Assembly (NCBI GenBank): GCA_025786725.1
Contig: JAHLTZ010000025.1
Location: forward strand, 186,001-250,000
DNA: 64,000 nt
Origin: Syncephalis fuscata S228
Taxonomy: Eukaryota > Fungi > Zoopagomycota
Direction of reading: 5' to 3'
In this document: one piece after another, positions 14,716-40,087 of the stretch
How the letters are laid out: each line of letters begins with the position of its first letter
Numbering within the stretch: the stretch's first letter is position 1
Position numbers and translations under genes: made by a program
Notes under the pieces: generated by a model
The model's input: only the letters and a program-made list of their open reading frames with translations
Databases searched by the model: none
What the model was told of the DNA's origin: nothing

Positions 14716-16707
14716 CTATAACGTATCGCACTCTCGCCCAATAAGCCGGGCGTTTTTATGTGGTGGCATAACGTACTCAGTAATGCGATTACAGCCCCAA
14801 ATCTTTAACACTAAAAGATTTGGACATTTTGCGTACAGCATTTCCAAGTGCGTGTCATCGATTGCACGACACCATGACAAATCCAGCCAACTAAGATTTG
14901 GGCAGTTGCCTGAGAGTGCTTCTAATACAGCATCGTCAGTCTGGTGTATACCATTAAGATTTAATTTGCACAGTTGTTCGCCGCTGTACTGTAGCACCGG
15001 CACAAGGCTTTTGGACGTTAATTCTAAACAGCGGGCTACATTAAACGATACAAGACCATGTTTCGATCCCTTAGATACCGGCATTGTAGTTAGCCAATGC
15101 TTGAACAATGCATCAACTCCATCGTCGGTTAAATTTGTACAATCAGCAAGCGATAGTTCACGTAATTTGTGACAATTGTATGCAATGCCGTCGGTTAGCA
15201 TTTTGTCTGTCAGCTGGATACCATTAGATAAATCAAGTTTATGCAGCTTCGGGCCCAATGCGCGTAAAACTGCAATAATAGTATCATCGGATACTTGACT
15301 TGTCGTGCCAGAAAGGTTTAATGTAGTCAGTGTGCCACGAGCTGATGCATCTGCTAGCCTCAGAATGTCAGCGTCACCAAGAGCATCACATCCACGAAGC
15401 TCAAGCTCTTCCAACTGACTGCATTTTTCAACCAAAGCAGTAATTGCTCTAGTCGACAGTCGTGCTGAGTGACCGACCGAAAATAAACGTAGTCGTCCAG
15501 ATACTGCTGTTACTAGTTTTTCAAACGCTGCGTCCGTCACTAGAAATGGACCGTGCAATGTAATTGAATGTAGATTTGTTAAATGGTCAGCGTAAAACTC
15601 TGTCGTTTCGGGCGATAAACGTCCGCAGTAGCGGAGTAACAATGTATGGATACTAGGACAAAAATGTGCTACATTCTTCAGATCATCCTCGTCCAATTCT
15701 ATCGTATTAATTTAGCAATTATTAAATTGTTTCCAATGAGTAAAATACTTACTGGTGCAGTCGTAAAGCCGAATGGCCGAGTTTGAAGGATTTAAAAACA
15801 TTTTTAAAGCAGCTGGTGAAAGTTGACGATGTTTACAAATGATTTGACAGATTTTATCCATAGTCTTTTCGTTTAGACTGCCCAACGAGCTTAAATTGGT
15901 AATGTTTTCGCCGATAATCTACTCATTAGAAAGTCAGTCCAGCAAGTCTTTTATGAGTGCTATACATAATAAATCAGCTCACCTTGATACACGCGTTTCT
16001 TAATGACACGACAGGGTCGTCTTCAGGCAGCCACCAAGTAGAATTATTGCCTTTACCACCACGACGTCGTCCACGCGTATCCAACTCAAGTTCCGGCACT
16101 TTACCAGCTTTAGCCGAGCAGTCAAGGCACAGTCGTCCGCCATTTGGTAATGACCGAGAAGCGTCGGTAACCGTGAATCGACGGCGGCATTGTTTGCAGA
16201 ACACTAAGTCGGATTGACCGGCGCTGCGGTGCCGCTTGTTGCTACTTGCATCTAATTGAAATTCGTCCTCGCTGTCCGAGTAACCTTGTTGCTTTCTGCG
16301 TAGAGCAGCACGTCTTTGCCGCATAGCTTGACCAATGTCGGCAATTGGGATTGTAGTTGATGCAGTCATCGGTGCATCTTCTACTTTGACGTCTTGCTGT
16401 CGCTGACGACGACTATTGCGCGTTTTAACCATTGGTTCTGGCGAACTTTCCTCTTTAACTTTTACGGCTTTGGATACTTTCTTTTTGTCCTCTTTGCTGC
16501 TATCGTTGTCGGAATTGCTGGACTCATATTCGAGTGGACGAGGCTTTGCAGCTTTTGGACTTAACATACTCATGTTACGCGGCTTAATACCTCGTTCCTG
16601 TAGACGTTAATACATTGTCAATGAAGTTACAGTAAACAGCGCTGTATAATACTTGCGCGAAGAAAATCGCTTAACGCGGACGTAGGTCCCTTTACGCGAT
16701 TGCTCAT
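14716..16707 (-). CDS. RAD7: Nucleotide excision repair protein Rad7 (LRR/RNI-like), 4 exons
   Basis: MSNRVKGPTSALSDFLR|ERGI N-terminal motif, CxxC..RRFTVT...LCLDC zinc motif, VVSLRNACIK, then cysteine-containing LRRs ending LIGRECDTL. The first intron is GC-AG (16598-16656). Confidence 0.9.
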
Positions 16708-16855
16708 TTTGCTTGCTTGTCAGAAAAGTAAAAAAACAAAGCGTGTGTATGTGCAAAAATAACGGCTAAGTAAAATTTAAGACCCATACTGTTCCATTTT
16801 AACTTGTCTTTTTGCACACAATTTAATCTAATTACCAAAAAAGAAATAAATAAAT

Positions 16856-18031
16856 GGGAAATTAGAAAAATACACCGTTTTTAAAATTTTACCATAATAC
16901 ATTCCCCTTTTTAAATTTCTTTATTAATAAAATCATTTTTGTTTGCCCCACACCTCGTTTTTTGTAATGACGTTTACCACAGATTAGATACTCTTTAATG
17001 GTATGTTTTCTTTTTTTATAGCTGTTTCAATACTATTAGTACTAATTTTTATATAACATATTTTGTATTGTATTTTTTGAGTTGCATTTGCCACAGCCAT
17101 ATCTTTAAAAGTCTTTTAACAAATAAAATACGATTGGCATATTGTTAATATAGCTACAATTGATTGAATTACGTAAATAAGCAAAGTTTTAAATTAAAAT
17201 TCATTGCATTTATTGTAATTAGCTTTTTTCCCGTCAGGCAATTTTTCCCATCAGGGATTTTTAGCTTTGCAACTTTTATTATTCAATAATATCATAAATA
17301 CACAATACTATTATTCAAATAATAATAAAAAGGCCTTTTATAATCCAATTATTTAGTTTATTATCAGAATTTATACATTTACGACTTCTATTATAAATAT
17401 ACTAATTTGAGCTATTGTTATAAGTTAAAAGCATTTAATAATAGTAACTTTATTAAAGTGATATTAAAACATTTGATTAAGCTGCTACTTCTATTTTTTC
17501 CCTCGTTTAGTTGCTTGGTCAATATTACATCATTTTATTACTGTTTTTGTAACAATGTCATTATTTTTTTATCGAATCAAAAGCAGACCAAGTTTTGTAA
17601 TAAAAAGTATTAGCATCTATTAAGCTATTACAATTGTTAGTGTATATTAAATAATCAAATATGTAACTAATAATTTTATTTGTACATTTTTGGTTTTACA
17701 GATAAAAATGTAGCAACATAATTTTTAATAAATTTATTGATAAATTTAATAGGTCATTACCAGAATCATATGGACAATCATTAAAATGCTTAATACTGTC
17801 ATCTTGTTGAATCACTATTTTTACTCTTGAGATTGCAACCATTAACAAGCTTAAAATTGTCAACAGCGGCCCTCAATTCTTCAATACTGCTAAATATAGC
17901 TTCTTTAAATAGTTTGGTAGACATTTGGTAGATTTTTCAAAACAATGTATTTCAATAAACAAAATTTAAAAATTAAAAACAAGAAATTTATTATGATAAA
18001 ATTTCAAAACAGTGTATTTTCTAATTTCCCC
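16856..18031 (-). mobile_element. Decayed MULE/MuDR-like DNA transposon with ~45-bp terminal inverted repeats (copy 1)
   Basis: Left end GGGAAATTAGAAAAATACACCGTTTTTAAAATTTTACCATAA is an inverted repeat of TTATGATAAAATTTCAAAACAGTGTATTTTCTAATTTCCCC (17991-18031). The minus-strand remnant from ATG 17924 reads MSTKLFKEAIFSSIEELRAAVDNFKLVNGCNLKSKNSDSTR* (MuDR/FAR1-like DNA-binding start), with KDMAVANATQKI (~17070-17105) and a degenerate zinc knuckle YLICGKRH (~16965-16990). Confidence 0.65.
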
Positions 18032-18362
18032 ATAAATCAGTTATTACTTAGCACTATGATGCTTCTAGCGCCGTTCACTATGTCTTCTGCTTCCGAAAGG
18101 AAATAAATGAACTTTTTTGCCGCTTATAAATTCTTCTACACCTTACAGAAACCAATCGTTGCCTTTGATGATGATAATTTTGGTGTGTCTATGAAAGAAA
18201 AACTATCTGCCCCTACACGAAGAATCACCGAAGCTATCAAGTAAATGGCCAATAGCTCTGGTGGTTCTATTGAGTTTATTTATGTTCATAAATACTTAAC
18301 ACGCCAAGTTTGCAATAAGTGTGAATTTAGAACATCGGAAAATATGACAGCTATTGAATCAA
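18032..18362 (+). pseudogene. Fanzor/TnpB-like nuclease fragment (copy 1, truncated inside the zinc finger)
   Basis: KPIVAFDDDNFGVSMKEKLSAPTRRITEAIK*MANSSGGSIEFIYVHKYLTRQVCNKC. Nearly identical to 34437-34766. Confidence 0.8.
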
Positions 18363-18798
18363 TATGAAATTGTGTTAAATAATTACTGCTAAAAAAAATA
18401 AATATATAATGCATTAAAATAAATTGAGTACGCAATCTAAATTGGTTTAAAGTTTCAAACAAATATATTGTAGCGCATGCGATTAATGTATACAAGCTAT
18501 CGTAAAAGTAAAAATCTACACATTTTACTTTAAAAAATGTAAATTTTCGTCATTTATTGCCAAAATAAAATTTTTCTTCCAAATTCGACATATATCTCGT
18601 GCCTATTCGTGTAAGACTTAAGGGGCAACAGCAGCATGGCTTGTTTCAAAATGAAATGTAGAAAAGCCAAAGAATAAAGCGAAAATGATCTATAAATACA
18701 CTGCATGTTTAACAATTTTGTAGGCTTTTACGATAATACGCTATTTTTTGCATTTACAATTTTACGCGTGGTTTTTTAAATAACAAACTATAGATACA

Positions 18799-20276
18799 AT
18801 GAAAATCATAAAGCAGCATCAACTTACAATATTAAGAAGTGCCTTGGCATTACTATTAACTGTTCAGTCTACATCTGCTATACCGCGTGATGCCGGTTTA
18901 GCCAAAGGTAATTTGTTATATTAGCTGCTTCATGAGTCCATACTAATAATAGCGACACAGAAATATTTGCGGTTGATCCACCGCAACTACCTTTGAGTAT
19001 TGTTATACCTGATGGGTTTAATCAAAGAAACGAGGTATCATGGAGCCAACAACTGAACAGCAAAAAAGTGAGCGTTTTATGCCAAGTGCAATATAATGTT
19101 AATAGCCAATTTCAATTTTCCAGGTATTTATTAAATATTGCTACTATTACAATCATTTAATTAATTACAAAAGCTTAGAATCTTAAACACAGCCAAAGAT
19201 CATTACGAAATGGACATGGAGATCAATATGTTTTACGTCCACAAAGCTCGTTTAATTTCCAAGGCAAATGTTGCCTTATTAAACCTCAATTATCTGATCT
19301 AACGCTAAGCTCGTATATGGGATCTCTGTCGCCTCTTGATAGGGCCAAATTAATTATACCGTTTTTACTAAACTAATACGAGGTAAGACTAGCTGCCATG
19401 CCAAAAACATACACAAGATTACTTAGCACATTTTAACTAGGTATTAATTATATACACAAAGTTGGATGGACCAATATCGACATAAGTGCTTTTGGTAAGG
19501 AATATTATGTTAACATTTAAATATTGCTAAATGAATATTGTAGATGTTGTTGTCAGATCGGATTCTGGGATAAATCCTATTATTAATGTTATGAAGACTA
19601 AGCATCCAAGACGCATTGAAGTTAGAAATGGCATTGTAGTACCGATTGATCCACCTCAAACGAAACTAATATATTTTACGGAATGGATTGAAAATACTCA
19701 AATCGATCCACGTAAAGTTGATTTATGGAAGTTGGTGAGCTTCTTTATGATACTCAATATAGTTTTTATCCTGAGAGATCTGAAAAAACCATTGAACAAA
19801 TCGTTGAAGAGACTTTCTCCAAGATGCCAAACGTACGACCAAATCTTAGTAATACAAAAGAACAATTTAAAAAACTCATGCCTCAGTTCAATGAGCTTAT
19901 TGGAAGAAGCTATAGGTCTGGTTTACCAATAGCGAATAACGATAAAGCTATTTTACTAAATACAAATGGTGGCATTCCCCTAAACAATGTTGATATATTG
20001 TTGTCACCACTCAAGCAGGCTTGGTTAACGGCAGAAATGATGGACTTGCTAAAGGTTGCGCAGGAAAGCATTTTTGGCATTAGCAATTTAGAAACTTGCT
20101 CATTGTTTGTGCTTAATGGATTGTTTCGATTGGGAATATATTGTAAGTCCACCAGCAAGTATACAGAGCATCCAAATGTGTATGCACCCATATTCGATAT
20201 GATAAACAGATTGTTAACAATCGACCCCAAAAAAACGATTGACGCTGGAACAATACTCAAAATAAATTGGCAGTAA
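18799..20276 (+). pseudogene. Secreted protein-kinase-like paralog 1 (several frameshifts: pseudogene or assembly errors)
   Basis: Signal peptide MKIIKQHQLTILRSALALLLTVQSTSA|IPR and kinase C-lobe motifs LIRGINYIHKVGWTNID, IDPRKVDLWKVGELLY, LLTIDPKKR. Indels in A/T runs at ~19362, ~19729, ~20230 and in exon 3. Confidence 0.7.
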
Positions 20277-20883
20277 TTCATGCGTCAATTGTTTACATGC
20301 ATCTTTTCAGCAATCTCAACATAAAACATAACATTATACACTATTGGTTTTAGTAACAAATATTGACATTTGCATTTAACTGTTCGTCATATTAGTATAC
20401 TATACCAAAGGTATTTATGATGGCACAATTAGTGCTAAAATGTTTGCTAGTATCAATAGCTGCTTTTTAGTACAAATAATAAACAAAGTGTAATAATATC
20501 AAATTAAATGGACAATTTACAGTGGTTTCATTTTCTTTAACACCACATTGCAGCGCAACACCGCTAATGCATATTCACTATAGTAAAGCTAGAATTGTAC
20601 ACGTTTTACTTCAAAGTATTTAACACCCAGTCGTCTGCTGCTTAAAATAAAAGAATTTATCCAAATTTAGCATATCTCGCTCGTGGATATTCGGATAAAG
20701 TTTATTAGGCAATAGCAGCATGGCTTATTTGGAATAGAAATACAAAGGGCGAAAACGAAAAATGATGTATAAGTACACAGTTTGTTCTATATTCTTTAAT
20801 ATTTTTTTACGATAAATAGGCCATTTCTTGCACTTACTCTTTTTACACACGGACTTTTTAAAAAATAACGAATTATATATATA

Positions 20884-22343
20884 ATGATAAGCAGTGTTTT
20901 AGTATTGATGCTTATTGTTCAGCTTGTATCTGCTATACCGCGTGAAGCTAATTTACCTTTGGGTAAGTTATTATGCTATATAATTATTCATTTACATTAA
21001 TAACAATAATGCATAGATGTATTTGATCCTGATCCACCGCAACCATACTTTGGTTTTGATATACCTGCTGGATTTGATCGGAATGACGAGATATCATGGG
21101 ATCAGCAATTAAATGACAGAGATGTGAAGGTTCTATGCCGTGTACGAAATAATCTTACTAATCAATTCCGGTTTTTACAGGTGTTTATTAAACACTATTA
21201 ATATTACAAACAGTTAACCAATCACAACATCATAGGATCTTAAGCGCAAGCAAACATCATTGCAAGATGATTCTGGGCGCCATTATGTTACACACCCACA
21301 AAGATCGTTTACTTTTCGAGGCAAGCTATGTTTTGCTATACCTCAATCGCCTAATGAAAATTTAAGTGATTTGTATGCAAGCCATATATCGCCTCTTGAT
21401 AGGGCCAAATTAATTATACCGTTTTTTACTAAACTAATACGAGGTAAGACTAGCTGCCATGCCAAAAACATACACAAGATTACTTAGCACATTTTAACTA
21501 GGTATTAATTATATACACAAGGTTGGATGGACCAATATCGACATAAACGCTTTTGGTAAGCAAACACTGCGCTGAATCTAGATATTGCTAACTAGACATG
21601 CAGATCTTGGAGTTGAACCAAATCTTGATAAATATCCTATTTTTAATGTTATGGAAATTGAACAACTAAGACGTATTAAAATTAAAAATGAAATTATAAT
21701 GCCAATTGATCCACCTCAGCTAGGATTAATATATCTTCCTGAGTGGATTGAAAATACCAAGATTGATCCACGTAAGGTCGATTTATGGAAAGTTGGCGAA
21801 CTTCTCTACAATATTCAATATAGTTTTTATCCTGAACAGACAGAAAAGCCATTTAAAGAACTTATGAATGAAATTGTTTCCAAGATGCCTGACGTACAAC
21901 CAAACCTTAAGAATACACAAGAACAATTCAAAAAATTTATGCCTCACTTCAAGAAGCTTATTAAAGAAGGTTACAGATCTGGTTTACCAACAGCGAATAG
22001 CGATCGAGCTATTTTATTAAATACAAACAGCGGTCTTTCAACAACCAGTATTGATACATCATCGTTTCCACTTAAACAGACTCGTTTAACAGTAGAAATA
22101 TTGGACTTGCTAGTCATTGCGCAGGACAGTATTTTTGGCTTTGGTCATCTTCAAAATTTCTTACAGTTTTTACTTAATGGATTTTTCCGATTGGGAATAT
22201 ACTGTAAGACAAGTTATTCGCATACTACACACCCAAATTTATATAATCGCATATTCGAGATGTTAAATACATTGCTGGAAATCAATCCCAAGAAACGATT
22301 AACGCCGGAACAATATTTGAGGAAAATTGACAGCAATAAATAG
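20884..22343 (+). CDS. Secreted protein-kinase-like (pseudokinase) paralog 2, 5 exons
   Basis: MISSVLVLMLIVQLVSA|IPRE signal peptide. Introns ~20963-21016, 21181-21235, 21444-21501 and 21555-21603 give an open frame. Motifs LIRGINYIHKVGWTNIDINAF, KVDLWKVGELLY, LLEINPKKRLTPEQYL. Confidence 0.8.
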
Positions 22344-22854
22344 TGCAATAATCAATGCTAAAATGATTGAATGATAGCAGAAACAGACAAACGAATACAT
22401 CACAACACTTGCATAATAATAGCTGTCTACCAACTGCATTAGCATTATATGAACGATGCTGCCGTTATTGCGACTCAACATGTTCCAATTAATAGAGTGT
22501 TTGGCACTTATATTTTTGTTGCTATACCCTTTCGCTCAATAAAACATACACAGAAACACACACGCACACGCACACACACGTATATATATTTTATTTATTG
22601 TAATATTGATAATTTTTTTTTGTCCATTATATAATTTGTTGGTATTATTTGATGTTTGGCTGTGAGTGAGCATAGCAACTTGTAAATATGCTTAGCTTTC
22701 CTAATAATAATCCATTTTGTTTAGCACTTACAAAATGAACTGCATGATGATTAGATAATAGCAATGGCTAATTACCAAATTATCAATTAATGATATTGCT
22801 GCGGGATAATATTAAATATTTTAACATTCATTAACGTTTATTATGCTGATTAAA

Positions 22855-23094
22855 TAACAGATAATAGTAATGTATTAGCCAGTTTAAATGGCCGAATGGA
22901 TAGTTTTTAGTGTTAATGCAACAATGGATGTAATATGCTTAAAAATCTACTGACATAACCAGTTGACTAAAATCATCTGCTGAGTATGGCAGCTTTATTT
23001 GATCAAAGCAAATGCATGATGGTTAGTGTGCTGTTGCAGCGTGCCTCAATCCAATAGATTGAATGACACTTCAATTGCATTTAGAGTAAAGGCA
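22855..23094 (+). repeat. Non-coding segment duplicated in inverted orientation at 43624-43835
   Basis: aatatgcttaaaaatctactgacataacc...gatcaaagcaaatgcatgatggttagtgtgctgttgcagcgtgcctcaatccaatagattgaat is a near-exact reverse complement of ~43640-43790. Confidence 0.9.
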
Positions 23095-23574
23095 TCAAAG
23101 TCTATCTAAATCAGAGAATCATTCATGCTAACATCAGTAGCCAATAGACTACAGATTATAGCTGGCATATCTGTAAAATGAACAGCGATTTAGATACAAC
23201 GCCATCTTTCTTATGTATACCACCATGCTATAAGATGTGCCATTTACACAGTGATATTATTATTTGCAGTATGATACTGTAACGCGTAATTGAATGATAT
23301 AACATACCAGCAAAACTATATCATTTAATTCTATGATACTTTTCAAGTTTACTGTATATTATTTCATTAATAGGCTGATACTTACGAGTTGTATGCCACA
23401 AACAGTTACCACTTAGCAGATAGTGCTTCAGGCTGTTTTTCTCGCATGAATATCATTGACCGTAACGAGTTGATCTGCATTCAAATCTAGCATATTGTTG
23501 TTGATGCTATATCTTGCAGCAAACAGCCTAATTGCTATGGAATGTTTATACAAATATTTTGTTTAGAATAAAAA

Positions 23575-23685
23575 TCCTCCTAATGGAGGCAGAAAAATTG
23601 AAATAATCCTTTTAAAGTATTCCCCTACACGGAGCGCTCTAGTAAAGGCGAGAGTGCTGTTCGCTCTGTAGAGGAACCAAGGACA
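23575..23685 (-). ncRNA. U5: U5 spliceosomal snRNA
   Basis: The minus strand reads UCCUUGGUUCCUCUACAGAGCGAACAGCACUCUC-GCCUUUAC-UAGAGCGCUCCGUGUAGGGGAA...AAUUUUUCUG-CCUCCAUUAGGAGG. This gives the stem I architecture, loop I (one U short of GCCUUUUAC), the internal-loop CCG, an Sm site and a 3' stem-loop. Confidence 0.9.
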
Positions 23686-24522
23686 GCACCCGAAGGTGCG
23701 AATGACTAGCTTCAAGACGGCTGTGATTGCAAACCAATTTAAGTTGTCGGAAATGCTAGTGGGATAGGCAATACAGAAATTACTAATTTAAAACTGTCAA
23801 TCAGCAATTTACATTTCATACCCATTGACTATCCTTTTTCATCACATCACAAATGGCTACAATTGTTATTAATATTCGCTAATAAAAAGTTATTATTTTC
23901 TTTCTATACCCCTCGACTACCACTATATACTATGTGTAAAATTTAGAATTGGTGATTGATAGTTTTAAATTATCAATTTAACGTTTTATATCTAATGTAT
24001 ATACTAATATGCTAGTGTCGGAGTTTAGAGTTTGCCTGCTCAACATTTTTGCCACGTATTCACCAAACGAGCAAAGATTAGCCGTCAGGTCAGCTCTATT
24101 AACAATATGATGTTACAAAACCTTAATTAGATTACAACGAAGCTTAATCTGAACTTCGTTAAATCATGGAATTTAGTCAATACTGCCAATAACACTTGGA
24201 TCTATCATAGTATACTGATTATTATATGAATAGCTACACAAATAATTACATAAAAAATAGCTATACAAGTATTATCGACATAATTAGCAATAGCAAAATA
24301 TTAACACTAGTATTACCATTATTATTACTATCATTACTGCATTCAATAACTGATTAGCATATAAATGTATATTTCATAAATAAATAAACTTACATCCTAG
24401 AATTAATTGCTATTTGTTTTATTTGATTTTCAAACCCTTTATTGTAAATATCACTATTTATCCCGATATAACAGCATTGATGTTATTGTGTATAAAGAAT
24501 AGGTTCCTGGGCAGTATTTATA

Positions 24523-25434
24523 CTATGGCACATCACCAGTAATTGTTTTTAGCTTAGGAAATATACGGTATGCATTACGTGTTGTTGCTGTGGCAACATC
24601 AAGCGTTGAAACACCTTTCAGTTCGGCAATTCGTTTGCAGACCCACTCTATTTGAGATGGTGTACTTGGTTCACCGCGCACCATTCCCAAAGCTGGCGCA
24701 TCCGACTCTAAAACCAAGCGGTCTAGCGGCACCAGCTGCACCAACCGTTCCAGCTGAGAATCACGTGCCAGTGACGGAGCAACCGAAAAGTACGCGCCAA
24801 GACCGAGACCTTCTTTAATGTATTTTGGTCGACCATCAAATGCATGAAGTAATACATTTGATGTTGCTGAAGCCTCGCCGCTATAGCCAGCTTCACGAAG
24901 CACGTCCAATACGTGGCGACCAGCTTGTCGTGAGTGTAGATTGACCGGTAGTTCTAGACGACGGGCCAGTTGCAATTGGGCCAGTAACACTTCACGCTGC
25001 TCAATACGGGCTGCATCCACGCCATTTGGATGTGTGGCCAGAACATGGGGCGAAAAATCCAATCCAATTTCACCAATGCCAACCACTTTGGGACTACTTA
25101 GCGCATAGTGCTCAAAAGCATCTTGTGATGTAAACCAATCAGTAATACGTACCGTGGTAGCAGTAGCGGTAGCATTATTAGCATCATTGGTAGCAGTTGT
25201 ACACGGGTGTATTGCTGTTGTTGGTTGCATGGGATGTAGCCCAATACAAAGTGCAATGCGATTGTTAAGTGCAGCCGCTTCAGGCAATGAAAGCCATGCT
25301 TCTATAGCCTGTATATCGCTATAGCGTTCCGTAACAATAATGCAAATCGGCAAACCGTCTCCCTGTGCCACTAATTCGCTTGTCGAATAGTAAGGCGGAT
25401 AAAGATGCGCGTGACAATCAACTAGTAAAGCCAT
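24523..25434 (-). CDS. TatD-family deoxyribonuclease (TATDN3-like), intronless
   Basis: VDCHAH, IGLHP, IGEIGLDF, VNLHSRQAG, LLHAFDG and LVLESDAP motifs. Confidence 0.92.
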   Translation of the reverse strand: MALLVDCHAHLYPPYYSTSELVAQGDGLPICIIVTERYSDIQAIEAWLSLPEAAALNNRIALCIGLHPMQPTTAIHPCTTATNDANNATATATTVRITDWFTSQDAFEHYALSSPKVVGIGEIGLDFSPHVLATHPNGVDAARIEQREVLLAQLQLARRLELPVNLHSRQAGRHVLDVLREAGYSGEASATSNVLLHAFDGRPKYIKEGLGLGAYFSVAPSLARDSQLERLVQLVPLDRLVLESDAPALGMVRGEPSTPSQIEWVCKRIAELKGVSTLDVATATTRNAYRIFPKLKTITGDVP

Positions 25435-27409
25435 TTATTTGCGTATAAAAAAAGTAAGAAGTCATAGATAGCAGTTTGCGAAACTGCAAAAGCAATTATT
25501 AACCAGCCAAACGCCGTACTGGTCATAACTACAATTATAGTAGCGGCAATAGAGCCATTACCACAGGCCACAACTGGCCTCCTATTCTTATCGCGCCATC
25601 CAGTTTAAGGGATACGCGGGCAAGTAGTTTGCAACACTGTGTGATTATCAATGGTTTGATGCCACCACCCACCGAGCAATCAGCGGGCTATTGGTATGCA
25701 TGTTCGGCAATAAGGCTATCCATAGGTTGTACAACAGCTGACATTAATTATGCCAGCTGTCGCAGCGACTTGATAGCCACCTCTAGGGCGTTATCGCTCA
25801 GCGATGAAGGTGTGGCAATGGTGGTAGTGGTGTGATACCCGTTTCCTTGGTTGGCCCGTTTCCTTCGTAACCTTGTCATTCATTTGCCCATTGACTTTTG
25901 GTGGCATGCCAATGAAGGCGTACAGGCCAAGTAGTCCCTAAGCATGCTTGACAAAGCATCATGAACAAGCCTTACTCATCAGTTATCTGTTAAATGCAGC
26001 GGCCCACATGCCACGTCTGCTGTTCGGACTCCCACACACGCCACAATTGTCCTGCAGCTGTGTCATCTGCCGTCACCTTTGGCATTTCTCGATTGCCTTT
26101 TACTTTTCTCTACTTGGTGGCAAGACGTCGACGTGTACATACACGTGGTGGGATATCTTCCATCATTTACTATTTAAATTAGCCTGGCCTTTAGCAGGTG
26201 GTGTCCTATTTCCATCTTCTTGCCTATTTAATAATATTATTGTCTTCTGCCACCCACCCATCTACCCACATTCACACAAAGCTTATCGCCGTGCTATTTT
26301 GTCTATATCTTTGCTTGCACACATTGTTTTATTTCGCTCGTCTTGACAATCCGCTTCGTTTAACCGTTATTAGTTTGTAAATTGTTTATACTACATTATA
26401 GCTTGAAACCGATAATCGCCATAGCATCATGACTTCTTTGTTATCAGGCAAGTAATTTTTATTTATTCTAAACTCAGTTTGCGTATCACTTCACGTGGCG
26501 AGCAAATAATAGCTTCTTTAGCAATATTGCGAAAGCGGAGTTCCCAGTCTAGTAGGCGCATGTGGTTGTTTGTTAAAATAGAATCTACATTTGTAGAATA
26601 CTTGTATTAGTTGTATTGATGCGTATCATTAGCGTTGCATTTTACGGGCGTAAATATACAACATTCATTATGACACATGTCATGTGGGAATGAATAGCAT
26701 TATGCAATAACGTTTGGCGATTTGTTTTATTGTTTCATTTCACATCAAGTGGTTTCGACAACTCGTTGAAACACTTATTTGCTACGCCCATTCTGTAACA
26801 ACAACAACTATAGCTTTGTTTATTGAGTCCACATGAACATACTATGCCCATGCCGGCCTTGATGTTAGCCTATCGCTCTTATTGTTCAGACTATTGTGTT
26901 TTAAAATAATCCTTGAATGTTGTACTTGTAAAAGTCGTACGATTGTACCGATCCAAGGATTGCTGTTGTCATCGATGATGCATGACTTTTCTAGTTTCAG
27001 CTCCATTGCTTAACAACAACAATTGCCATCGTCGTGGCCATAAAAACATCATTTCTTGTTGAACCAATGATCGTTTTATTCGTTTTTTTTCATTTCCAAG
27101 TTGGACTCTTGTTTTCACGTGCCGTTCATTGTGGAGAAGGAGAAAAAGGTCTGTCAGCTGCTGTTTCCGTCTTTTCGCCTCGGCCTGTCAGCGCTGCCCC
27201 TTCATCCTATTTTTTTAAACCATAGCACGCGTGCCTCCCCTTTTTGCCTAGTTTTACCATTTACTATTATTCTTTCTTTAACTCACTTACACACCTACCC
27301 ATCCACACCATACACTTGCCATTGGTATCTTTTTACTTTCGCTTCTTTGTGCTGTTGCTGTTACTATATTACGGTAACCAAAACGACAACAACAACAACA
27401 CTGCACTAC

Positions 27410-27441
<32 letters not shown>

Positions 27442-27721
27442 ACAAACGGATACTGTTTGTCGACATTTCCCGTAGTTATAGTTGTAGTAGTAGAAGCCAC
27501 GATTATTTCTGTTATTCGTTTATTCCTTTGTTGTCAGTTTAGCTAAGACGACAACGACAACAAGACGCTGTCATTCTTTGCAAGCTTTGTTCTAACTGCG
27601 TAGTTTATTGTCTTGATCTACCGTGTATTCGTTTTCTTTATTCTCATTACATCATCTTATCAATCGTTGATTCGGCGAAACAGCAGGTGGCCAATTATTA
27701 ACAAAACCGCTTCATATAGGC

Positions 27722-29383
27722 ATGGAGATTCCTCAATTACTGGCCGACGTTGTCTACTTTACCGGATTTATCTTCCATGCTAGTAAGTAATCTATCTAAA
27801 GGCTGATTTAAGAGTGGCCTATGAATTGGCTGGTTATGCGTGAATAGTTGTCTCAAAGACTCCTTTTACAAAGGATGGCTGGCCGACTGACATCCAAGAC
27901 TATATGTGGGTGCGTGTGGGCGTGTGTTCGCCTAACTGGCTGGCTGGTGGGCTGTAGATCAGTTTCTAGTCGGTAACACCTGCATATAGCTTGGATGGCT
28001 TTACCAATAAGGCTGACTGCGCATATCTGCGTCGGGCGAACAGGTGTGATACTTGTTCATCTGCACGTGCAGCAGCTACATCAAATGCCTATAACACCTT
28101 GACTTCAATGGTGGTCAATGTCGTACAAATAGAATATTGACGCTGACGCCTTTGTAGCGCTTTTACTGCTGGGCGTACCTGTAATACATGCAACATTTGG
28201 ACCGCCTGTAAATGGCTGGTCTCTTGCGCAGCATCTAATGGTGCGATGGACTCGTGCCGTCAATACTTCGCTTAAAATCCATCAGTTACGCTTAATGTCG
28301 CGTCTAGGTGGATGGCTACAATCCCGCGGACTATTAGTGACACACGACTCGGTTTTGCCGGCCTTTTGGCTCGGTGATACGCCCTGGTCTGTACGCACTC
28401 GGCTGGCCCGAGGTGAAGTAGATCTTTTAATTGTGTACATTCATGGTAAGTTCAAAAGTGTAAGATCGGCTTGACAGGCTATTAATTCTGTGTTATCAGG
28501 CGGTGGCTTCTGTTGTGGCAGTCCTTTGTTGCAGATACAGTCGGTCAATGCGTGGCGCCAAAAGCTTGAACAGCAAGGTCTTCGTGTGGCAGTTGCCTTG
28601 TTGGAATATGAACTTGCGCCCGAAGCTGTGTATCCACAACCTACCAATCATCTTTGCCAGACTATTCGCGATCTACGTGCTATACCTGGCGTTGATGGCG
28701 TATCAATGGTGCTGACTGGTGATTCAGCCGGTGGACACTTGGCCATTTCCACTGTACAACATCTTGAGCCAGCTGAACAACCTAATGCCTTAGTACTTAT
28801 CTCTCCTTGGGTACGCCTTTATCCTACCTCGGATGCCATTTGTCGCAATATCAGTACTGATGTATTGACACCACAAAATCTATTAACATGGGCCAATGCT
28901 TACTTGGGCATTTCTAATAATGGTCTATCTTTACCTGCTAAATCATACTACGCTACATCCGATACCGTTGAAGTTGTTAAACCGACCGCCACATCGCCTT
29001 CAATCAACTCTGCCAATGCTAATGAACGTACCGCGCTATTGGCATCATCAAACTGTATGGAACCAACCGGTGTATCCGATATCAGTACAACATCGGCCAT
29101 GGCAGCAGTCTCGACCAACATGACGGCACAACGTGCACTTGTTCCAACCCATATCCCACCTTGTCTTATAGTTGTGGGCAGTCGCGAGTTATTTGTCGAG
29201 GATGTTGTGGCATATGCTTGCATGCTTGAAGAGGCCGGCACCGATGTATCCATTCTAGTTGAGCCAGGTGCAGTGCACAACTATGCTATGTTGCCTGCTT
29301 TGGCCGGCTCGGACGCTTATCATCGCGCCGTTGATAATATCACCAGCTACATTGGCAAGGTTGCCACTGTCGAGTGCAATTAA
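27722..29383 (+). CDS. Alpha/beta hydrolase, hormone-sensitive-lipase family (steryl acetyl hydrolase-like); 5' exons uncertain
   Basis: VYIHG|GGF across intron 28446-28499, LEYELAPEAVYP, LTGDSAGGHLA, LISPWV, GSRELFVED and GAVHNY. The junction of the putative first exon (27722-27782) to exon 2 could not be resolved cleanly. Confidence 0.8.
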
Positions 29384-31589
29384 TACCATTTTGCCCAGTA
29401 TTTTATTAGTTTTATTTGCTTCTTATTAGCCGGTAGTAATGCTGGCTAACTTGAATTTTACGCTCAATTACTTTCTACGATGCTCTCTCAATTCTCCCCA
29501 ATTTTTTCCTTTTATTTCAGCGATTGCTTTAAACAAACAGCTGCAAGCGATAAGCATTTCTTAGTCAAATGCTTTATTCATAACATTAGCATGTTTTTAT
29601 TCTTATATTCTTACAGTACCATTTTTTGTTCCATTGCGTTTTTCCAGTCTTTCATTTTATTTGTTTTTGCGCCGCGGATATTTACATAGAATGCCTATAC
29701 ACACATAGTATATCGTTATTGGGCGCTTTCTTTTGGTCTGGATGTTATAACGTTGCCATCATCAACAGTCAATGTAACACCTTCAATAATGTACTACCAA
29801 TTATACAAATACTATAAATTGCGATTCAATATTTATTTATGTTAAAATTGTATCTTTATTATAATTTGTAGTGTCAGATAATATAGTTTAGACGATTAAG
29901 CTACACACTATCCTATGCTAGCCTTTAATGTTTACTAACATTTAAGCTGCACTTAGAATACCATGCATTAATTGGTTGGTACTGTTTTAATAATAGACAT
30001 AATTTTTATTAACCAATAATTATTACAATTCAACTACAATAAACTAAATAGCTAGTGTGATATTAAATAAAACTAAAATCAGACTAGAAACTAATACACT
30101 TTATTAGTGTTAAATAAAGCTATCATTTTAAACATAGCTAATAATAAGGCAATATAAAGCCAGCTAACACAGTTTTCTATATGGCAGTCTATCTATCCAG
30201 CAAAGCAGATAAACCAATTTAAAATAGCAAATTTAACTAAAATGCATGATTTAAATATCAATTTTATTAAATCTTTGGTTGCTGATTCTGTTCAATATAT
30301 TAAATAGCTTATTGGTACTTTTTGCTTACCAGTTGGAATAATAAACAATCTAATAAACATTCGACTTGTTAATGGCTATTGATTACTTTTTGCGTTGCTA
30401 TTTCACTATCACTTTGGTGCACTATGTTGTTTAAATAGCTTTATGAAGCATTTATGCTAACTACATATACAAATACATATACAAATACATATACAAATAT
30501 ACTATAAAGACTACATCTAGATGCATATCGTGGTTATTAACTATATCATAGTATGCTTATCATTGTTACAACTATTTATTTTTAAAACCACGCCAATGCA
30601 ATCATAATGGCAAAAACTAGGCAAAAGGACCAATGCTACAAGGCAAAAACGAATGTTTATTGCGTAGCAGTCTCAGTCGCACGTCAGTAACAACTTGGCA
30701 TTAGTTAGTGCCACTTTCAAGCAACTAGCAATAAAGGCGTATACAGCTATTTGCATGCTATCATTTATGCTTACAGATATTATATCAATTTAATTAAATA
30801 CAGCAATTTATTTAAAATTTTAAAGCATTGACGCGTGTTTAAAATATAAACTGGTAGTATATATAGCCAGAAAGTATGTAACTAACAATCACTCATAAAT
30901 GCTGACACCAATTACAGTACCAGTTCAGGAAAAATACGCTATAATCAAGCTGTCGATGCAACATCGTTAAGCCACGCTTGGCTACTCGTCAAAAGCAATA
31001 TTGATAAATAAGATTATTCGGCTGGCGGAAGAGAGCAAAAAGAAGACAATCAATGAAAAGTTGACGGTACATATAGCCAACACAGTTATTGTGCTGATCA
31101 GAGCACCAAACAGCAGTAGTAATAATAGCATATTACACTGCTTTACTTGCGCTGGATACTTATTTAGTGTTTACACTAGCAGTGCTTTCTACATTGCTGT
31201 TGTCGTGCGTGTACAGCAGACGTACACGACGATTGCAGTGGCTATATACTGCCAAATCACTGTATAATTTGCTTTGCCATAGATCATCGCTGCAGATCGC
31301 ACTGGCAACAGTTTGTACAGTATTGACAATAGTAATCGCACTACACTATCAAGATTGCATACATTGCTGCCAGATAACCTGCAGTTGTGATCAATAGTAA
31401 CACAAAGCATACAACGAGATTTTCACAGCATATGCTCAAATATCATAAAAACAAGCCAGGAATGCACTTAACGTGCCAATAAAGCTGCCAAAAGCAATGA
31501 TCGGAGTAATGATTTGCAAAAAAGGTCAGTACAAAAGAGCAATGCAAGTACATAGTGTAGAAGGCGTTTGTACCTAACTATTAGCCAGT

Positions 31590-31890
31590 TAACTACCGAC
31601 ACTATCTATATAACATATATGGAGTGTAAAAGTATATGGTATGGATATATGCTATCAAGTGTGAAGAAAGAGAAAGGAAATGTAGTGACGTGGATTGTAT
31701 GCTGTGTTGTTAATATGGCGGATTAATACTAATGTCAATTGACACCAAACTACTCATTATTATAGAACAAGTTTGTCAGTAAATAGCGAGTATATTAAAA
31801 TTATTAAATTAATGCAATAAAAGTCAATTGACACCAAAAACTACTCATTACCATAGAACATGTTTGTCAGTATTGACCAATATATTAAAG
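31590..31890 (-). repeat. Dispersed repeat homologous to 13385-13660, containing a ~70-bp tandem duplication
   Basis: Units at ~31733-31802 and ~31822-31892 both begin GTCAATTGACACCAAA (a 10-bp palindrome) followed by CTACTCATTA..ATAGAACA.GTTTGTCAGTA. Confidence 0.75.
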
Positions 31891-31977
31891 TTTGTCTCTA
31901 TGTTTATCACATATTTTATTTTTATAGTTAATGTATACGTAAGTGTTATAATATTAACAAAATCTATATTATACAAC

Positions 31978-33170
31978 TTATATTTCGCCTCGATTAATAA
32001 TGCTGAATGACGCGTCATCATCAGTCATATCTCCTGATGTAGTTTGGCGGCTTTTACGTCCCAGCTCTGCTTCTTCTGCCTCCAGCTGTTGAAGCATTTG
32101 TGCTAAACGAGCTTTTCTTGATCGTAGCGCCTGTTGATCGGCAGATACATTACGTGTACTAGTGGCTGCAGCCACTGCGGTTGGTCTGTAGCCGTGGTGC
32201 TTGTTGAAGCGTCGCCCATGCTGGCAAACGCAGCAGCTCCCATGCCCACGGCTCTTACCGCGTCCGCTGTCCATCCGCCCAATGGTAGACCAGACAAAAG
32301 TCCGGCCAGACCTCCATTGTTTCTTGGCAGCACTTCATTTGCGGCGGCAGTTTGCGTCGTATTGGTGACAGGCGACGACTAATCAATAACAATCTTTAGT
32401 CAATAGTTATTTATAATGAATAAACAATGATAATCACCTCAGATGTGCTGCCTAGTAGCAACCGTTGTAGCATTCGGAATCCATAACGGATCCATGAGAA
32501 AAATGCAATACGTGCTTGTCGAGTTGCTTCTACAATGGCTGCATCGATATTTGATTCGTTTGCAACTAAGCACGGCTCAAGCAAATGACGATAAATAACC
32601 ATTGCTCCATTAGTTTGCGGCAGTACCATCCAGAATGTGAATATGACTTTCATCAAGTAGTAAAATGGCACCCTTTTGTAATAAAATGGTTATAATTTAG
32701 TTCTACATGCTATAATAATAATAATAATAATAATAACTTACCAGAAAAAGAATTCGTCTAATATCCATTCTGCGTAGTGCCAGACGGCGAGGACACACCA
32801 GTAAGTTAGCCAGCGGGATTGTTCGAGTCGAAGCAATTCAAGTGGATCCAGTGGCTTCTCCTCCGCTTCGGCCGCCATGGACGCATCTTCTTGCGCTGTG
32901 GCTGCGGTAGTATTCGGTGAAGTAGCCATACGCATTGCAACACCGCCCGCCCAACTTAACCAGGTTGTATTGGGCGTGCCTGCTTCGCGTTCAAGTTCAA
33001 CTGCATCTGCAGCACTAAGACATTTGTAGCTTGCATATGCTGGATATAGAAAGCCTGCCGTATAGCTAATATTGATGAGTAAGTGAATAGACACGCTGTA
33101 ATTTGGCTACAGCATCAGGTAAAGCTATTACTTACCAAATAAGATATGAACACAATGAAAATAGACCCAT
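31978..33170 (-). CDS. TB2/DP1/HVA22 (YOP1/REEP) ER-shaping protein, 4 exons, apparent frameshift at ~32181
   Basis: AGFLYPAYASYKCL, RWLTYWCVLAVW, FFFW|VPFYYLMKVIFTFWMVLPQTNGAMVIYRHLLEP and ESNIDAAI motifs. A coiled-coil tail lies in the shifted frame. Confidence 0.88.
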
Positions 33171-33436
33171 TGTTGATCGATAACTAGTAATAAGCTATTG
33201 TAGCTGGCTGCTGCAAGTGAATAAGACTGAGATAATAAAGGCAAATGAGTAACTGAGAAAATGATAATGTTTTATTTAATGTGGATAACAACTGTTGTAT
33301 TTGTAGTGAAAAATCAATAGAAAGATAAGGATGGATACGATGGCTTCTGGTGGTGCTAGTTGAATGACTGTGCTGTATATTTGATTGACCAGTGATAGTT
33401 GGCATGGTGGATGTTTTGTTGATGGTATTATTTAAA

Positions 33437-34436
33437 GGAGTTTTAAAAATACACCGTTTTTATTTTAAATTTTAAAAAATTGTTTAGTTGCATTTGCCAC
33501 AGCCATATCTTTAAAAGTCTTTTAACAAATAAAATACGATTGGCATATTGTTAATATAGCTACAATTGATTGAATTACGTAAATAAGCAAAGTTTTAAAT
33601 TAAAATTCATTGCATTTATTGTAATTAGCTTTTTTCCCGTCAGGCAATTTTTCCCATCAGGGATTTTTAGCTTTGCAACTTTTATTATTCAATAATATCA
33701 TAAATACACAATATTATTATTCAAATAATAATAAAAAGGCCTTTTATAATCCAATTATTTAGTTTATTATCAGAATTTATACATTTACGACTTCTATTAT
33801 AAATATACTAATTTGAGCTATTGTTATAAGTTAAAAGCATTTAATAATATAACTTTATTAAAGTGATATTAAAACATTTGATTAAGCTGCTACTTCTATT
33901 TTTTCCCTCGTTTAGTTGCTTGGTCAATATTACATCATTTTATTACTGTTTTTGTAACAATGTCATTATTTTTTTATCGAATCAAAAGCAGACCAAGTTT
34001 TGTAATAAAAAGTATTAGCATCTATTAAGCTATTACAATTGTTAGTGTATATTAAATAATCAAATATGTAACTAATAATTTTATTTGTACATTTTTGGTT
34101 TTACAGATAAAAATGTAGCAACATAATTTGTAATAAATTTATTGATAAATTTAATAGGTCATTACCAGAATCATATGGACAATCATTAAAATGCTTAATA
34201 CTGTCATCTTGTTGAATCACTATTTTTACTCTTGAGATTGCAACCATTAACAAGCTTAAAATTGTCAACAGCGGCCCTCAATTCTTCAATACTGCTAAAT
34301 ATAGCTTCTTTAAATAGTTTGGTAGACATTTGGTAGATTTTTCAAAACAATGTATTTCAATAAACAAAATTTAAAAATTAAAAACAAGAAATTTATTATG
34401 ATAAAATTTCAAAACAGTGTATTTTCTAATTTCCCC
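33437..34436 (-). mobile_element. Decayed MULE-like TIR element (copy 2; internally deleted near the left end)
   Basis: 33486-34436 is nearly identical to 17080-18031. Left end GGAGTTTTAAAAATACACCGTTTT retains the TIR core. The transposase remnant ATG is at 34329. Confidence 0.65.
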
Positions 34437-34939
34437 ATAAATCAGTTATTACTTAGCACTATGATGCTTCTAGCGCCGTTCACTATGTCTTCTGCTTCCG
34501 AAAGAAAATAAATGAACTTCTTTGCCGCTTATAAATTCTTCTACACCTTACAGAAACCAATCGTTGCCTTTAATGATGATAATTTTGGTGTGTCTATGAA
34601 AGAAAAACTATCTGCCCTACACGAAGAATCACCGAAGCTATCAAGTAAATGGCCAATAGCTCTGGTGGTTCTATTGAGTTTATTTATGTTCATAAATACT
34701 TAACACGCCAAGTTTGTAATAAGTGTGAATTTAGAACATCGGAAAATATGACAGCTATTGAATCAAAGCGTAAAATACACGCCGTATTCCGATGCCAATC
34801 TTGTTATATAGTGTGGAATCATGATGTAATAGCGTCAGAATATACACACAATATTTTTACATACAAGGCAAGAAATAACGATAAAGATCTGATGGAATTC
34901 AGATGTGAAGACAGCCAATTACTACTTTCTTTTCAATAA
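34437..34939 (+). pseudogene. Fanzor/TnpB-like RNA-guided nuclease, C-terminal RuvC-II/zinc finger/RuvC-III fragment (copy 2)
   Basis: KPIVAF(N)DDNFGVSMKEKLSA(P), IYVHKYLTRQVCNKC, KRKIHAVFRCQSCYIVWNHDVIAS and EFR. This matches the TnpB/Fanzor pattern AFGDG..vDEyxTSqxCxxC..CxxC...WNRDxxA. Confidence 0.85.
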
Positions 34940-36039
34940 TGCGACTGATATGACTCTTTTGCACTCCTTTGGTTAACTCCAGTAAGTAATATTCAAATTA
35001 TTTGTATTAGTTAATTTACAAATACCGCATGGCTAATATAAAACGTTGAATTTAAATTAGTACAAAAATGTAAACATACTGCTACTGAAGGAAAAAAAAC
35101 AAGCAATATATAGAAAAGCGCGGTTTACTAGGCGGCTTAATATCCTTACCTATTTGCAGAGGCACACACTGTATGGCATGCCACTTTTTGCTACTGGCAC
35201 ATGAGCATAAGAGCCGGGCTATATCGCACGTGTAACACTGTCTGCACGAGCTTTGCCAATTTTCTCCTATAAGGAGCATGTTAATTTGATGATCACATGG
35301 TCGTGGCGTAAATAAACAAATACTTTAGCTGTGAATATATAAACCAATGTTTGTAATATTAAATTGAAGATTTTGTAACACAGTTATCTATTTAATAAAC
35401 TAAATACTAGATAATGTATTGTTTAATCTGTAACATAATATAAGCAATAATAATAGTAGTAACTAGCTGTCATATAATACTTATACAAGTGCCCACACAC
35501 AATTTTCACTAGCCGTTTTCACGGCAATTATCGCATGGTTTGGCATTGTAGTTCTTTTTGCAATTATTTCAGCATAATGTATGGTCAAAAAGCCATGCGT
35601 CTAGTATGTCGTTAGAATAGGTTCTTAGCGCCTAACGTGTTAGTGCACATAGATAATTTGCTTATCACGCGTTCGCGCAGTACACATGTATATATGCCTG
35701 CCAATGCACGCGCACACTTTCTGCGCAATGGTTTGGCGCCGTCATGGCCAATAAACGCTGTGTCGAACTCTCACGTGTTTTGGCTAACTGCCATCTTCAA
35801 ACTAGTGCCAAGTCGGTGTGGGCATCTATTTATTAAGAAGCCAGCGGCCATCTTGTTCTTATACCTCTATTCTCGCTATCGTTATCTATTTGTATTTTAA
35901 ACAATATTTTCTGCTTTATTCAGCCATTTGTTTAATTAAATAACTGTACCTTCGCTATTTCATATTATTTAGCTTATTAGCACACACTATTAGTTTATAA
36001 TTTGTCGTATATATTTATCTAAATCTCATAACAAGCACC

Positions 36040-38673: not shown

Positions 38674-40087
38674 ATGGGAAACAGTCCATCAAACCGCGTA
38701 GAACGAGATCACAAAGTATCAGTTTAAATTCACCCCGCAATAACCGAAATAGTATATCATCATCCTCTACCTCTCTACCTAGTTCATCCGATTCCTCATC
38801 ATCCAGCAGCAAGATGCCATGGGCTTTTTGGCATACAGATATTAAAAGATCTGGCAGCAAATGTCAAGAGACTAGTTCGGGATATTCACCAAGTAAAGGA
38901 TTTCTTAGTCCACGTAATCGCAATTCCAAAAACAACACCAGGTGGGAGATTATTGATGGCCAAAAGTATTTAGTTATGCAATCCGGTGGTCCAGCTGTGT
39001 TTAGCTGTGATGGTGAAGATGAGCAAAGCAGGTAAGTAAAGTTAGAAATTATTTATAGTATGCGACTGACTCCACAATAAACAATCTTAGATTATCTTCT
39101 GTGCATCAAGTAATGCGCTATACATTGCGTACAAATTGCATTGTGCCCATGGCCGATATCAAGCGTGTTTTAGATATAGGGTGTGGCGATGGCCATTGGC
39201 TGCTGGTACATTGTCTTTATTCGTATATTAACTAAACACTAACAATCAAACATTAGGATATGGCCAATGATTATCCTCAAACTCGATTTACTGGACTTGA
39301 TATTTTAGATCAAATGAAAGATCGTGTGCTTCCGAAAAACTGTGAATTTTATTGTGGGGACGTTTTACAAGGTAATTTAAACATTTGTAATTTCATACAA
39401 AAAGAAATACTAATAATTGATTACGCTTGAATTAATGTAGGACTGCCATTTTCCGATGGCTACTTCGACTTAATTCATCAGCGTTTTATGTATTTATTTA
39501 TTCCAAGTAATGCATGGAGCGCTTTAATTTCAGAAATGGCACGAATACTTAAACCCGGCGGTCAAATTCTTTTAATAGAACGACAGTTTCATGTGGAAAA
39601 AACAAATGACGTTATTGGTACAATGCTTGGAGCTTTTAACAGTGCAATCAGCAACAATGAAGTTACCACGAGCATATGCGATCGTCTTGATCAAGTGCTT
39701 GATAAGTCTGGATTTGTTGATATCAACAAGAATAGCATCAATATTCCTGTCGGAGAATGGGGCGGCGTTCCTGGAAGGCTCATGGGCGAGGCGGTAGTGA
39801 GCTGGATTGTTGGTTCACGTGAGATAATTGTCAAACGAAGTCAGCTTAGTTATGAAGAGTTTGATGCAAGAATGTCTATTGCACCTGAAGAGTTTAATAA
39901 GGCACATGCCTATTTCACCATTCATATGTATACTGCACAGAAAGCTGGAGCAAAAAAAGTTAAAAATCGAAAACCTATACCTTTGGTAGTGTTTTTAAAA
40001 AACACCAACCAGATAATACCAGTGTTATGCTCGCATATTCCATTAGAAAATCATTTGCGAAATAAGTTGTTAGTTATTAAGCTATGA
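38674..40087 (+). CDS. Class I SAM-dependent methyltransferase 2, 4 exons; 3' end uncertain
   Basis: MGNSPS(K) start with an apparent frameshift at ~38692; VLDIGCGDGHWLL|DMANDYP, FTGLDI, G|LPFSDGYFDLIHQR, RILKPGGQILLIE, PVGEWGGVPG and AQK motifs. Confidence 0.88.

Follow-up and report, generated by a model that had tools for sequence, protein, structure and literature searches.

A MULE relic and a Fanzor-tail relic that adjoin in a fungal genome, and whose junction was probably duplicated without transposition

The window analysed here, a stretch of 64,000 nucleotides (G000:C168:186001-250000) within a 29.4-Mb assembly of 371 contigs, holds two loci at which the right end of a MULE abuts the tail of a Fanzor gene, and neither part is functional now. 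The account that we regard as probable is that two unrelated dead relics came to adjoin one another, and that their junction was copied once, locally and by a non-transpositional route. The parts of the two loci, referred to as copy A and copy B, are the following.

33437-33485, plus strand: short-form left terminus of the copy B MULE, including the left TIR (GGAGTTTTAAAAATACACCGTTTTT), with the TIR core at 33446; not homologous to the left end of copy A
33486-34436, plus strand: MULE body and right TIR of copy B, ending in ...CTAATTTCCCC; three differences from 17080-18030 of copy A over about 950 bp
34101-34329, minus strand: remnant of the N-terminal DNA-binding domain of a MULE transposase in copy B, in pieces 34204-34329 and 34101-34268, split by a private deletion of about 100 bp at about 34203
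34437-34553, plus strand: non-coding leader of the Fanzor-tail repeat, ending in ...TTACAG; no protein homology here
34554-34939, plus strand: C-terminal coding relic of a Fanzor, with AFNDDNFG at the RuvC-II position, the C4 finger CNKC...CQSC and WNHD at RuvC-III
34940-35043, plus strand: 3' non-coding end of the Fanzor-tail repeat, with homology to the paralog L034 up to 35043
16856-17079, plus strand: long-form left terminus of the copy A MULE, with the left TIR GGGAAATTAGAAAAATACACCG and about 200 bp of subterminal sequence, TIR core at 16867; absent from copy B
17080-18030, plus strand: MULE body and right TIR of copy A; three differences from copy B
18031-18362, plus strand: first 332 bp of the Fanzor tail in copy A, with an abrupt end in the zinc-finger region

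Structure and copies of the duplicated block

The near-identical duplicate noted in an earlier, sequence-only reading of this DNA is borne out by pairwise alignment. Copy A (17080-18362, 1283 bp) and copy B (33486-34766, 1281 bp) lie on the same contig, the former 16.4 kb upstream of the latter, and are separated by eight differences, namely six substitutions and two single-base indels. When 16900-18700 is aligned with 33306-35106, the near-identity runs uninterrupted from 17080/33486 to 18362/34766 and is not seen outside these limits. On the left, it starts exactly where the short and long forms of the MULE left end converge; on the right, it ends inside the zinc finger of the Fanzor ORF, from where copy B runs on to about 35043. 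The right boundary of copy A at 18362 shows no TIR and no terminal features.

A search of the whole assembly located a third copy of the block at C151:1955-3236. The contig that carries it matches window positions 16427-19863, including the flanks, at 99.3%; the one interruption is an inserted LINE 3' fragment of 826 bp, recognised by its T-run, its 14-bp TSD and its zf-RVT ORF. Within the common block the C151 copy has 14 differences of its own from copy A, and it is cut at the same point of the Fanzor tail. Given the 99.3% match and the common flanks, C151 represents the entire A locus again, either duplicated or in the form of another haplotype, and two independent junction loci therefore remain. 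A 111-bp probe laid across the MULE/Fanzor junction found only B, A and C151 genome-wide, its remaining matches stopping at the MULE end. The three-way alignment with the C151 copy places three of the eight A-B differences in the MULE part and five in the Fanzor part, and reveals among them both A-specific and B-specific states.

Several lesions are common to A and B. In the Fanzor part they comprise a TAA codon at 34646-34648, where paralogs have CAA, and the substitutions HK for DE, TR for TS and HD for RD, at conserved motif and presumed catalytic residues; in the MULE part, a deletion of about 100 bp interrupts the DNA-binding ORF. Since both copies have these lesions in common, both parts were already dead when the block was copied, as the sequence-only reading had maintained.

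A non-autonomous MULE and its probable master

The element at A and B is a non-autonomous MULE of about 1.0-1.2 kb with both TIRs and subterminal repeats. The description of a TIR-bounded unit with a minus-strand transposase remnant thus holds, and the remnant corresponds to the N-terminus of a MULE DNA-binding domain. The TIR GGG(G)AAATT(A/T)GAAAAATACACCG is present at both ends of A and of B, with cores at 16867 and 33446 on the left and at 18006 and 34411 on the right, where the elements close at 18030/34436. Furthermore, the motif AAAATACACCGTTTT lies 11 nt inside each MULE end and is repeated subterminally. At least 40 genomic segments match 33486-34436 at about 80% identity, with homology stopping at 34432-34436, and the last ~90 bp of the MULE also have inverted matches upstream of several genomic copies. 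The short left end of B recurs in L012, L016 and L029, and the long left end of A aligns with L007, L018, L021 and L027; a genome search for further copies of the A/B lineage itself returned none apart from A, B and C151.

A consensus derived from 29 copies of the family restores a minus-strand frame of 118 aa with a C..C..H..C pattern, which is open in two genomic copies (L013:1299-1652 and L023:2042-2395). The deletion in A and B, at 17798/34203, is private to them and has removed the zinc-finger segment with this pattern. Against the Pfam model of the MuDR DNA-binding domain (PF03108), the N-terminal ORF gave a weak match below the cut-off (E 0.046-0.18), and the MULE assignment consequently rests on linked elements that contain the MULE DDE domain (PF10551). 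This domain has 15 matches in the genome, and all 15 are preceded, about 300 bp upstream and on the same strand, by the N-terminal ORF of the family, which there has 84% amino acid identity to the family consensus; terminal DNA is also common to these elements and the short family.

Two 2.4-kb elements, L061 and L062, display four ORF segments on the same strand: the DNA-binding domain (DBD), a region matching PF10551 (71 bits) and PF00872, a SWIM finger, and a C-terminal segment with a weak, sub-threshold match to a zinc knuckle. In L061, the second of these maps to 1318-1947 (PF10551, 71.3 bits; PF00872, 42.8 bits) and 1925-2452 matches the SWIM profile PF04434. Both elements have the 23-bp TIR GGGAAATTTTGAAAAATACACCG and are flanked by perfect 9-bp TSDs that differ between them (TACTTTTTA in L061, TAAAATTTA in L062), and over their full length, both TIRs included, they agree at 99.3% while lying in unrelated flanks. 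The family of L061 and L062 is hence a Mutator-superfamily element that has transposed recently. These 2.4-kb MULEs are the probable master of the short family, and might still mobilise the A/B MULE in trans. The expectation of masters elsewhere in the genome is in this respect upheld for the MULE, whereas no intact Fanzor was detected.

Searching the flanks revealed no 9-bp TSD around the MULE of either A or B, and the flank of copy A, a low-complexity sequence with three near matches to a TSD within 40 nt, is uninformative. The MULE bodies give a star-like tree in which elements with the short left end are polyphyletic, which indicates that ends have been exchanged between MULE copies before. 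Recombination is therefore a plausible route by which the copies trade ends and flanks.

A relic of the Fanzor C-terminus

The plus-strand fragment is a Fanzor relic of about 600 bp, in which the final ~125 codons are followed by the 3' non-coding end. The TnpB/Fanzor identity proposed for it is corroborated by the 96-aa ORF at 34649-34936, which scores 30.5 bits (E 4.2e-7) against PF07282 (Cas12f1-like_TNB), above the gathering cut-off of 26.3. Of the two profile comparisons suggested at the outset, the one on the nuclease relic was hence positive, and the one on the MULE remnant gave only the weak PF03108 match, the assignment coming through PF10551. The fragment had been taken for the 3' half of the ORF, but it amounts to the last ~125 residues (15-22%) instead. 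The motifs AFNDDNFG, YLTRQVCNKC, CQSC and WNHD are all found on the plus strand, as had been asserted for each copy; copy A, however, comes to its end at 18362 with the zinc finger incomplete.

Genomic paralogs keep the pattern VDEYxTSQxCxKC...CQSCG..WNRDxxAAKNI. A profile built from seven genomic tails found its best PDB matches in the C-termini of TnpB-like L79 (9b0l, E 0.0017) and of G. theta Fanzor1 (9cer, E 0.007), followed by TnpB and Cas12 entries. A phmmer search of the PDB with the 96-aa ORF alone yielded nothing relevant, and the full-length relatives P0019, P0021 and P0008 produced weak matches to PDB entries, again C-terminal. Through exhaustive profile searching, 806 relatives were collected, of which the long ones, at 559-1037 aa, are always matched at their C-terminal end. 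Compared with database proteins, the relic shows 35-53% identity to their C-terminal ends; in full-length relatives, the locus matches residues 454-548 of 559 (P0028) and 761-861 of 863 (P0019), starting at about 34551, and the WED/REC and RuvC-I parts of a complete protein are missing. The preceding non-coding stretch, 34437-34553, is probably an intron remnant, to judge from the splice-acceptor-like TTACAG at its end.

Besides the lesions common to both copies, copy B alone has a 1-bp deletion at 34614/34615. The motif D-X(125,275)-[TS][TS]-X-X-[C4 zinc finger]-X(5,50)-RD, defined for Fanzor and TnpB (PMC3627910), is not present in full; the region of its first Asp (RuvC-I) is absent, and the C4 finger is intact. 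A rearranged RuvC-II has been described in which Gly or Pro occupies the canonical Glu position and an alternative Glu lies about 45 residues downstream (PMC10530073). The paralogs read AFGDGNFG, followed by VDEY about 41 residues later, and the position of these motifs suggests that AFGDGNFG may be a Fanzor-type RuvC-II site without its Glu, for which the DE ~41 residues further on would provide the alternative Glu. The predicted fold of 34860-35050 gives no signal in the 3' non-coding end (z -0.31 against shuffles), and Rfam, searched over 16500-35500 at gathering thresholds, returned no match at the tail. The sole Rfam match in that interval is a U5 snRNA gene at 23574-23685.

Fanzor tails across the genome

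Fanzor tails are numerous in this assembly. PF07282 has 71 genomic matches and the 96-aa ORF at least 150, all of them in open frames shorter than 170 aa, and PF01385 has none in the genome. The full-length TnpB model NF040570 is matched only at positions 322-387 of 389, and the full-length relatives behave likewise, P0028 finding genome-wide matches to residues 428-552 of 559 only and P0019 to residues 732-862 of 863 only. The genome matches thus comprise the last ~125 residues only and no intact Fanzor master was detected, a result to be read in the light of the fast divergence of Fanzor N-terminal halves, of introns that break frames and of scoring confined to the best candidates.

The tail lineage represented by 34437-35043 has about 20 copies at 70-78% identity, and no inverted repeats were found to bound it. 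Among the subset of loci examined, on which these family boundaries rest, paralogs begin 0 to -93 bp relative to 34437: the L034 group and L042 start within a few bases of this position, and L041, L044 and L048 extend 65-93 bp further to the left. A repeat with conserved minus-strand frames lies upstream of the paralogs L032-L034 and L044. At 39 other Fanzor-tail loci, a search over about 1.5 kb showed no TIR belonging to the A/B MULE family. Six or seven MULE loci do have a tail less than 1.5 kb away; these tails belong to other Fanzor lineages, and their distances and orientations vary, as expected in repeat-rich DNA.

Origin of the junction and of its second copy

The account that we favour builds on the identities of the two parts, their copy numbers, their boundaries and their common lesions. 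The MULE relic and the Fanzor-tail relic would have come to adjoin at locus B. Since the Fanzor piece is located outside the MULE TIR pair, a MULE transposase would not carry the tail along. The junction would then have been copied once, from B, where the tail is complete, to A, where a long-form MULE was resident. The process would have been homology-driven, by ectopic gene conversion, templated break repair, SDSA or template switching, with a copied tract that passed the MULE right end and took in 332 bp of the Fanzor tail. The tail being complete in B and cut in A, B or a lost relative of B is the likely donor. Furthermore, the left limit of the tract coincides with the limit of homology between the short and long forms and its right limit is arbitrary, within a non-homologous flank, a combination that fits homology-initiated copying and not transposition. 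Three sequences cannot prove the polarity of donor and recipient, and we infer both the direction, from B to A, and the repair mechanism from this geometry.

Several observations weigh against this local copying of a chance junction. The MULE of B is also devoid of a TSD, so that locus B has been rearranged too and its junction may not be the first one. The start of the tail, within a few bases of the starts of independent paralogs, would be unexpected under random juxtaposition. Lastly, a 7-bp match, ATTTAAA, flanks 33437-35049, with its second copy 6 bp past the end of tail homology; the empirical chance of such a match is ~0.9% (about 1%) in a single test, and is estimated at 1-5% after multiple looks. 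This match hints that the block 33437-35049, or the tail as a filler at a TIR break, arrived in one event.

The latter idea leads to a different sequence of events, which we hold to be possible but unlikely. A transposase would have cut at the right TIR of B, an ectopic Fanzor tail would have been taken up as filler at the break, and a later break at A would have been repaired from B. The filler would accordingly sit between the TIR and its TSD, and the repair at A would carry the MULE end together with 332 bp of tail, a scenario that we view with the same doubt. It agrees with the start of foreign DNA at the last TIR base (34436/34437) and with the recurrence of the left flank TTATTTAAA as GAATTTAAA 4 bp past the end of tail homology; the recent transposition of the MULE family would have made transposase available, and end-swapped elements do occur in the family. 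The TSD-like match, however, extends to only 7 of 9 positions, with a chance of 1-5%; the flank of A, with its three near matches, is of too low complexity to lend help; and a filler would not be expected to start at the usual left boundary of the tail family.

The sequence-only reading had proposed a MULE-Fanzor chimera that moves as a unit, that is, a true composite, a single non-autonomous element made of the MULE plus the Fanzor tail, mobilised in trans and inserted at A and at B. We deem this very improbable. An identical junction in three places, the ATTTAAA on both sides of 33437-35049 and the precedent of Mucorales, in which Fanzor1 genes occur within TIR elements of the MuDR type that have 9-bp TSDs (PMC3627910), would all be in keeping with such an element. 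Nevertheless, there are only two independent loci, the left termini of A and B differ, and no TIR follows the tail: downstream of it, the only further core of the family is a weak match at 39336, 4.3 kb away and probably due to chance. Copy A stops inside the ORF without terminal features and has no TSD, and a search for a 9-bp TSD around 33437-35049 likewise returned none, the best match reaching 7 of 9 positions. The tail is, moreover, absent from other MULE copies, and this MULE is absent beside other tails of the lineage. A mobile composite is thus largely refuted by the junction count, the left ends, the boundary of A and the absence of a TSD. The sequence-only reading had itself named the finding of these copies alone, with no shared termini, as a mark of local duplication, and this is what the genome search revealed.

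To the notion that the 1.28-kb blocks were made or homogenised by the assembler or polisher we give almost no credence: many regions of this assembly are near-identical duplicates or haplotigs, but the structure of A, with both junctions, is repeated on the independent contig C151 with 14 differences of its own and a private LINE insertion, the A-B differences include states specific to each copy, and other family members, ~20% divergent, are too distant for polishing to homogenise.

Comparison with known systems

The locus is ordinary transposon debris and represents no new kind of element, since its parts belong to the known kinds of non-autonomous MULEs and Fanzor relics. As a non-autonomous MULE, that is, an internal-deletion derivative, the element shares TIRs and subterminal repeats with the 2.4-kb elements that have a DBD, a DDE domain, a SWIM finger and 9-bp TSDs, and of the transposase ORF it has, like dozens of copies in this genome, no more than the N-terminal part. 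There is no essential difference from such elements, to which A and B add their private deletion of about 100 bp and two forms of the left end. In Pack-MULEs, the captured fragment lies between the TIRs and is amplified together with them; here, it lies outside the TIRs and is found at two independent loci.

No new question in RNA-guided nuclease biology is opened by these results. What they do yield is a MULE family, now defined, whose 2.4-kb candidate masters transposed recently; a further indication that the many Fanzor copies of this genome have been reduced to their last ~125 codons; and a hint that MULE ends and flanks are exchanged by recombination. Should the tail have been captured after all as a templated filler at a transposase-made break at the MULE right TIR, and have then reached a second MULE by homology-driven repair, an eventuality that we rate low, MULE copies would be carrying flanking Fanzor fragments without transposing them, which could explain the end-swapped chimeras.

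Among Fanzor-bearing elements, the Fanzor1 Helitron2 copies CRe-1, 2 and 3 of Chlamydomonas are 5'-truncated, with the 3' end strongly over-represented and occasional capture of non-Fanzor sequence upstream of the normal 5' end (PMC3627910). The present case is similar in these respects, but no Helitron termini and no hairpin/CTRR end were identified, and copy A is without the 3' end; the likeness is a lead only. [quoted passage not shown] As in those elements, a Mutator-superfamily element shares one locus of a fungal genome with a Fanzor1-like C-terminal motif, and no working MuDR transposase is encoded. [quoted passage not shown] The locus therefore serves as a caution, in that a Fanzor fragment placed at a MULE TIR, with its junction duplicated, mimics the published MuDR-Fanzor1 association.

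Related MULEs and exchange of ends

Two 2.4-kb MULEs were located elsewhere in the assembly (G000):

L061:601-3008 (G000:C90:22412-24819), 2.4-kb MULE
L062:279-2688 (contig C351), 2.4-kb MULE

Compared pairwise, these two elements share 99.3% identity from TIR to TIR; their flanks differ, and each is bordered by a perfect 9-bp TSD, the sequence of which is not the same at the two sites. Their coding content consists of four ORF segments on one strand, corresponding to a DBD, a MULE DDE domain and a SWIM finger, plus a weak, sub-threshold match to a zinc-knuckle. The pair appears to represent a Mutator-like transposon with recent activity, whose transposase is probably spliced. The short-form left end, one of two left termini and the one found in copy B, L012 and L016/L029, is discordant with the phylogeny of the element bodies in the MULE tree (loci L004-L030); this discordance suggests that MULE copies have swapped ends repeatedly.

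Duplicated loci and a polymorphic insertion

Many paired repeat loci occur genome-wide, with 95-99.6% identity over the entire 3.7-kb locus, flanks included:

Near-identical locus pairs: L006/L009, L014/L019, L016/L029, L018/L010, L025/L026, L027/L028, L032/L033, L039/L040

Haplotigs or recent segmental duplications are therefore numerous in the assembly, and repeat copy counts are too high. The duplicate of the copy-A locus on contig C151 carries an insertion:

L003:388-1213 (G000:C151, about 842-1667), 826-bp insertion

This segment is missing from the window (corresponding site between 16793 and 16813). One of its ends bears a T-run, its TSD (CCATTTTAACTTGT) is 14 bp long, and it contains a zf-RVT ORF of 224 aa; it is a 5'-truncated LINE, polymorphic between the C151 and window copies of the locus.

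Surroundings of the relics

An exon lies upstream of the copy-B MULE, about 340 bp away:

Window 32738-33094, minus strand, TB2/DP1/HVA22-family gene exon (PF03134, E 3e-5)

The relics are therefore located in a gene-proximal intergenic region. At other loci (L033, L034 and L044), several Fanzor tails of the same lineage as the copy-B tail are joined, 40-700 bp upstream, to another repeat that spans at least 650 bp. Its minus-strand frames are conserved (e.g., IMPFINYTSPDYNEWMNSDIKQLGARLHPLGE), and it may be the remainder of the ancestral Fanzor-carrying element.
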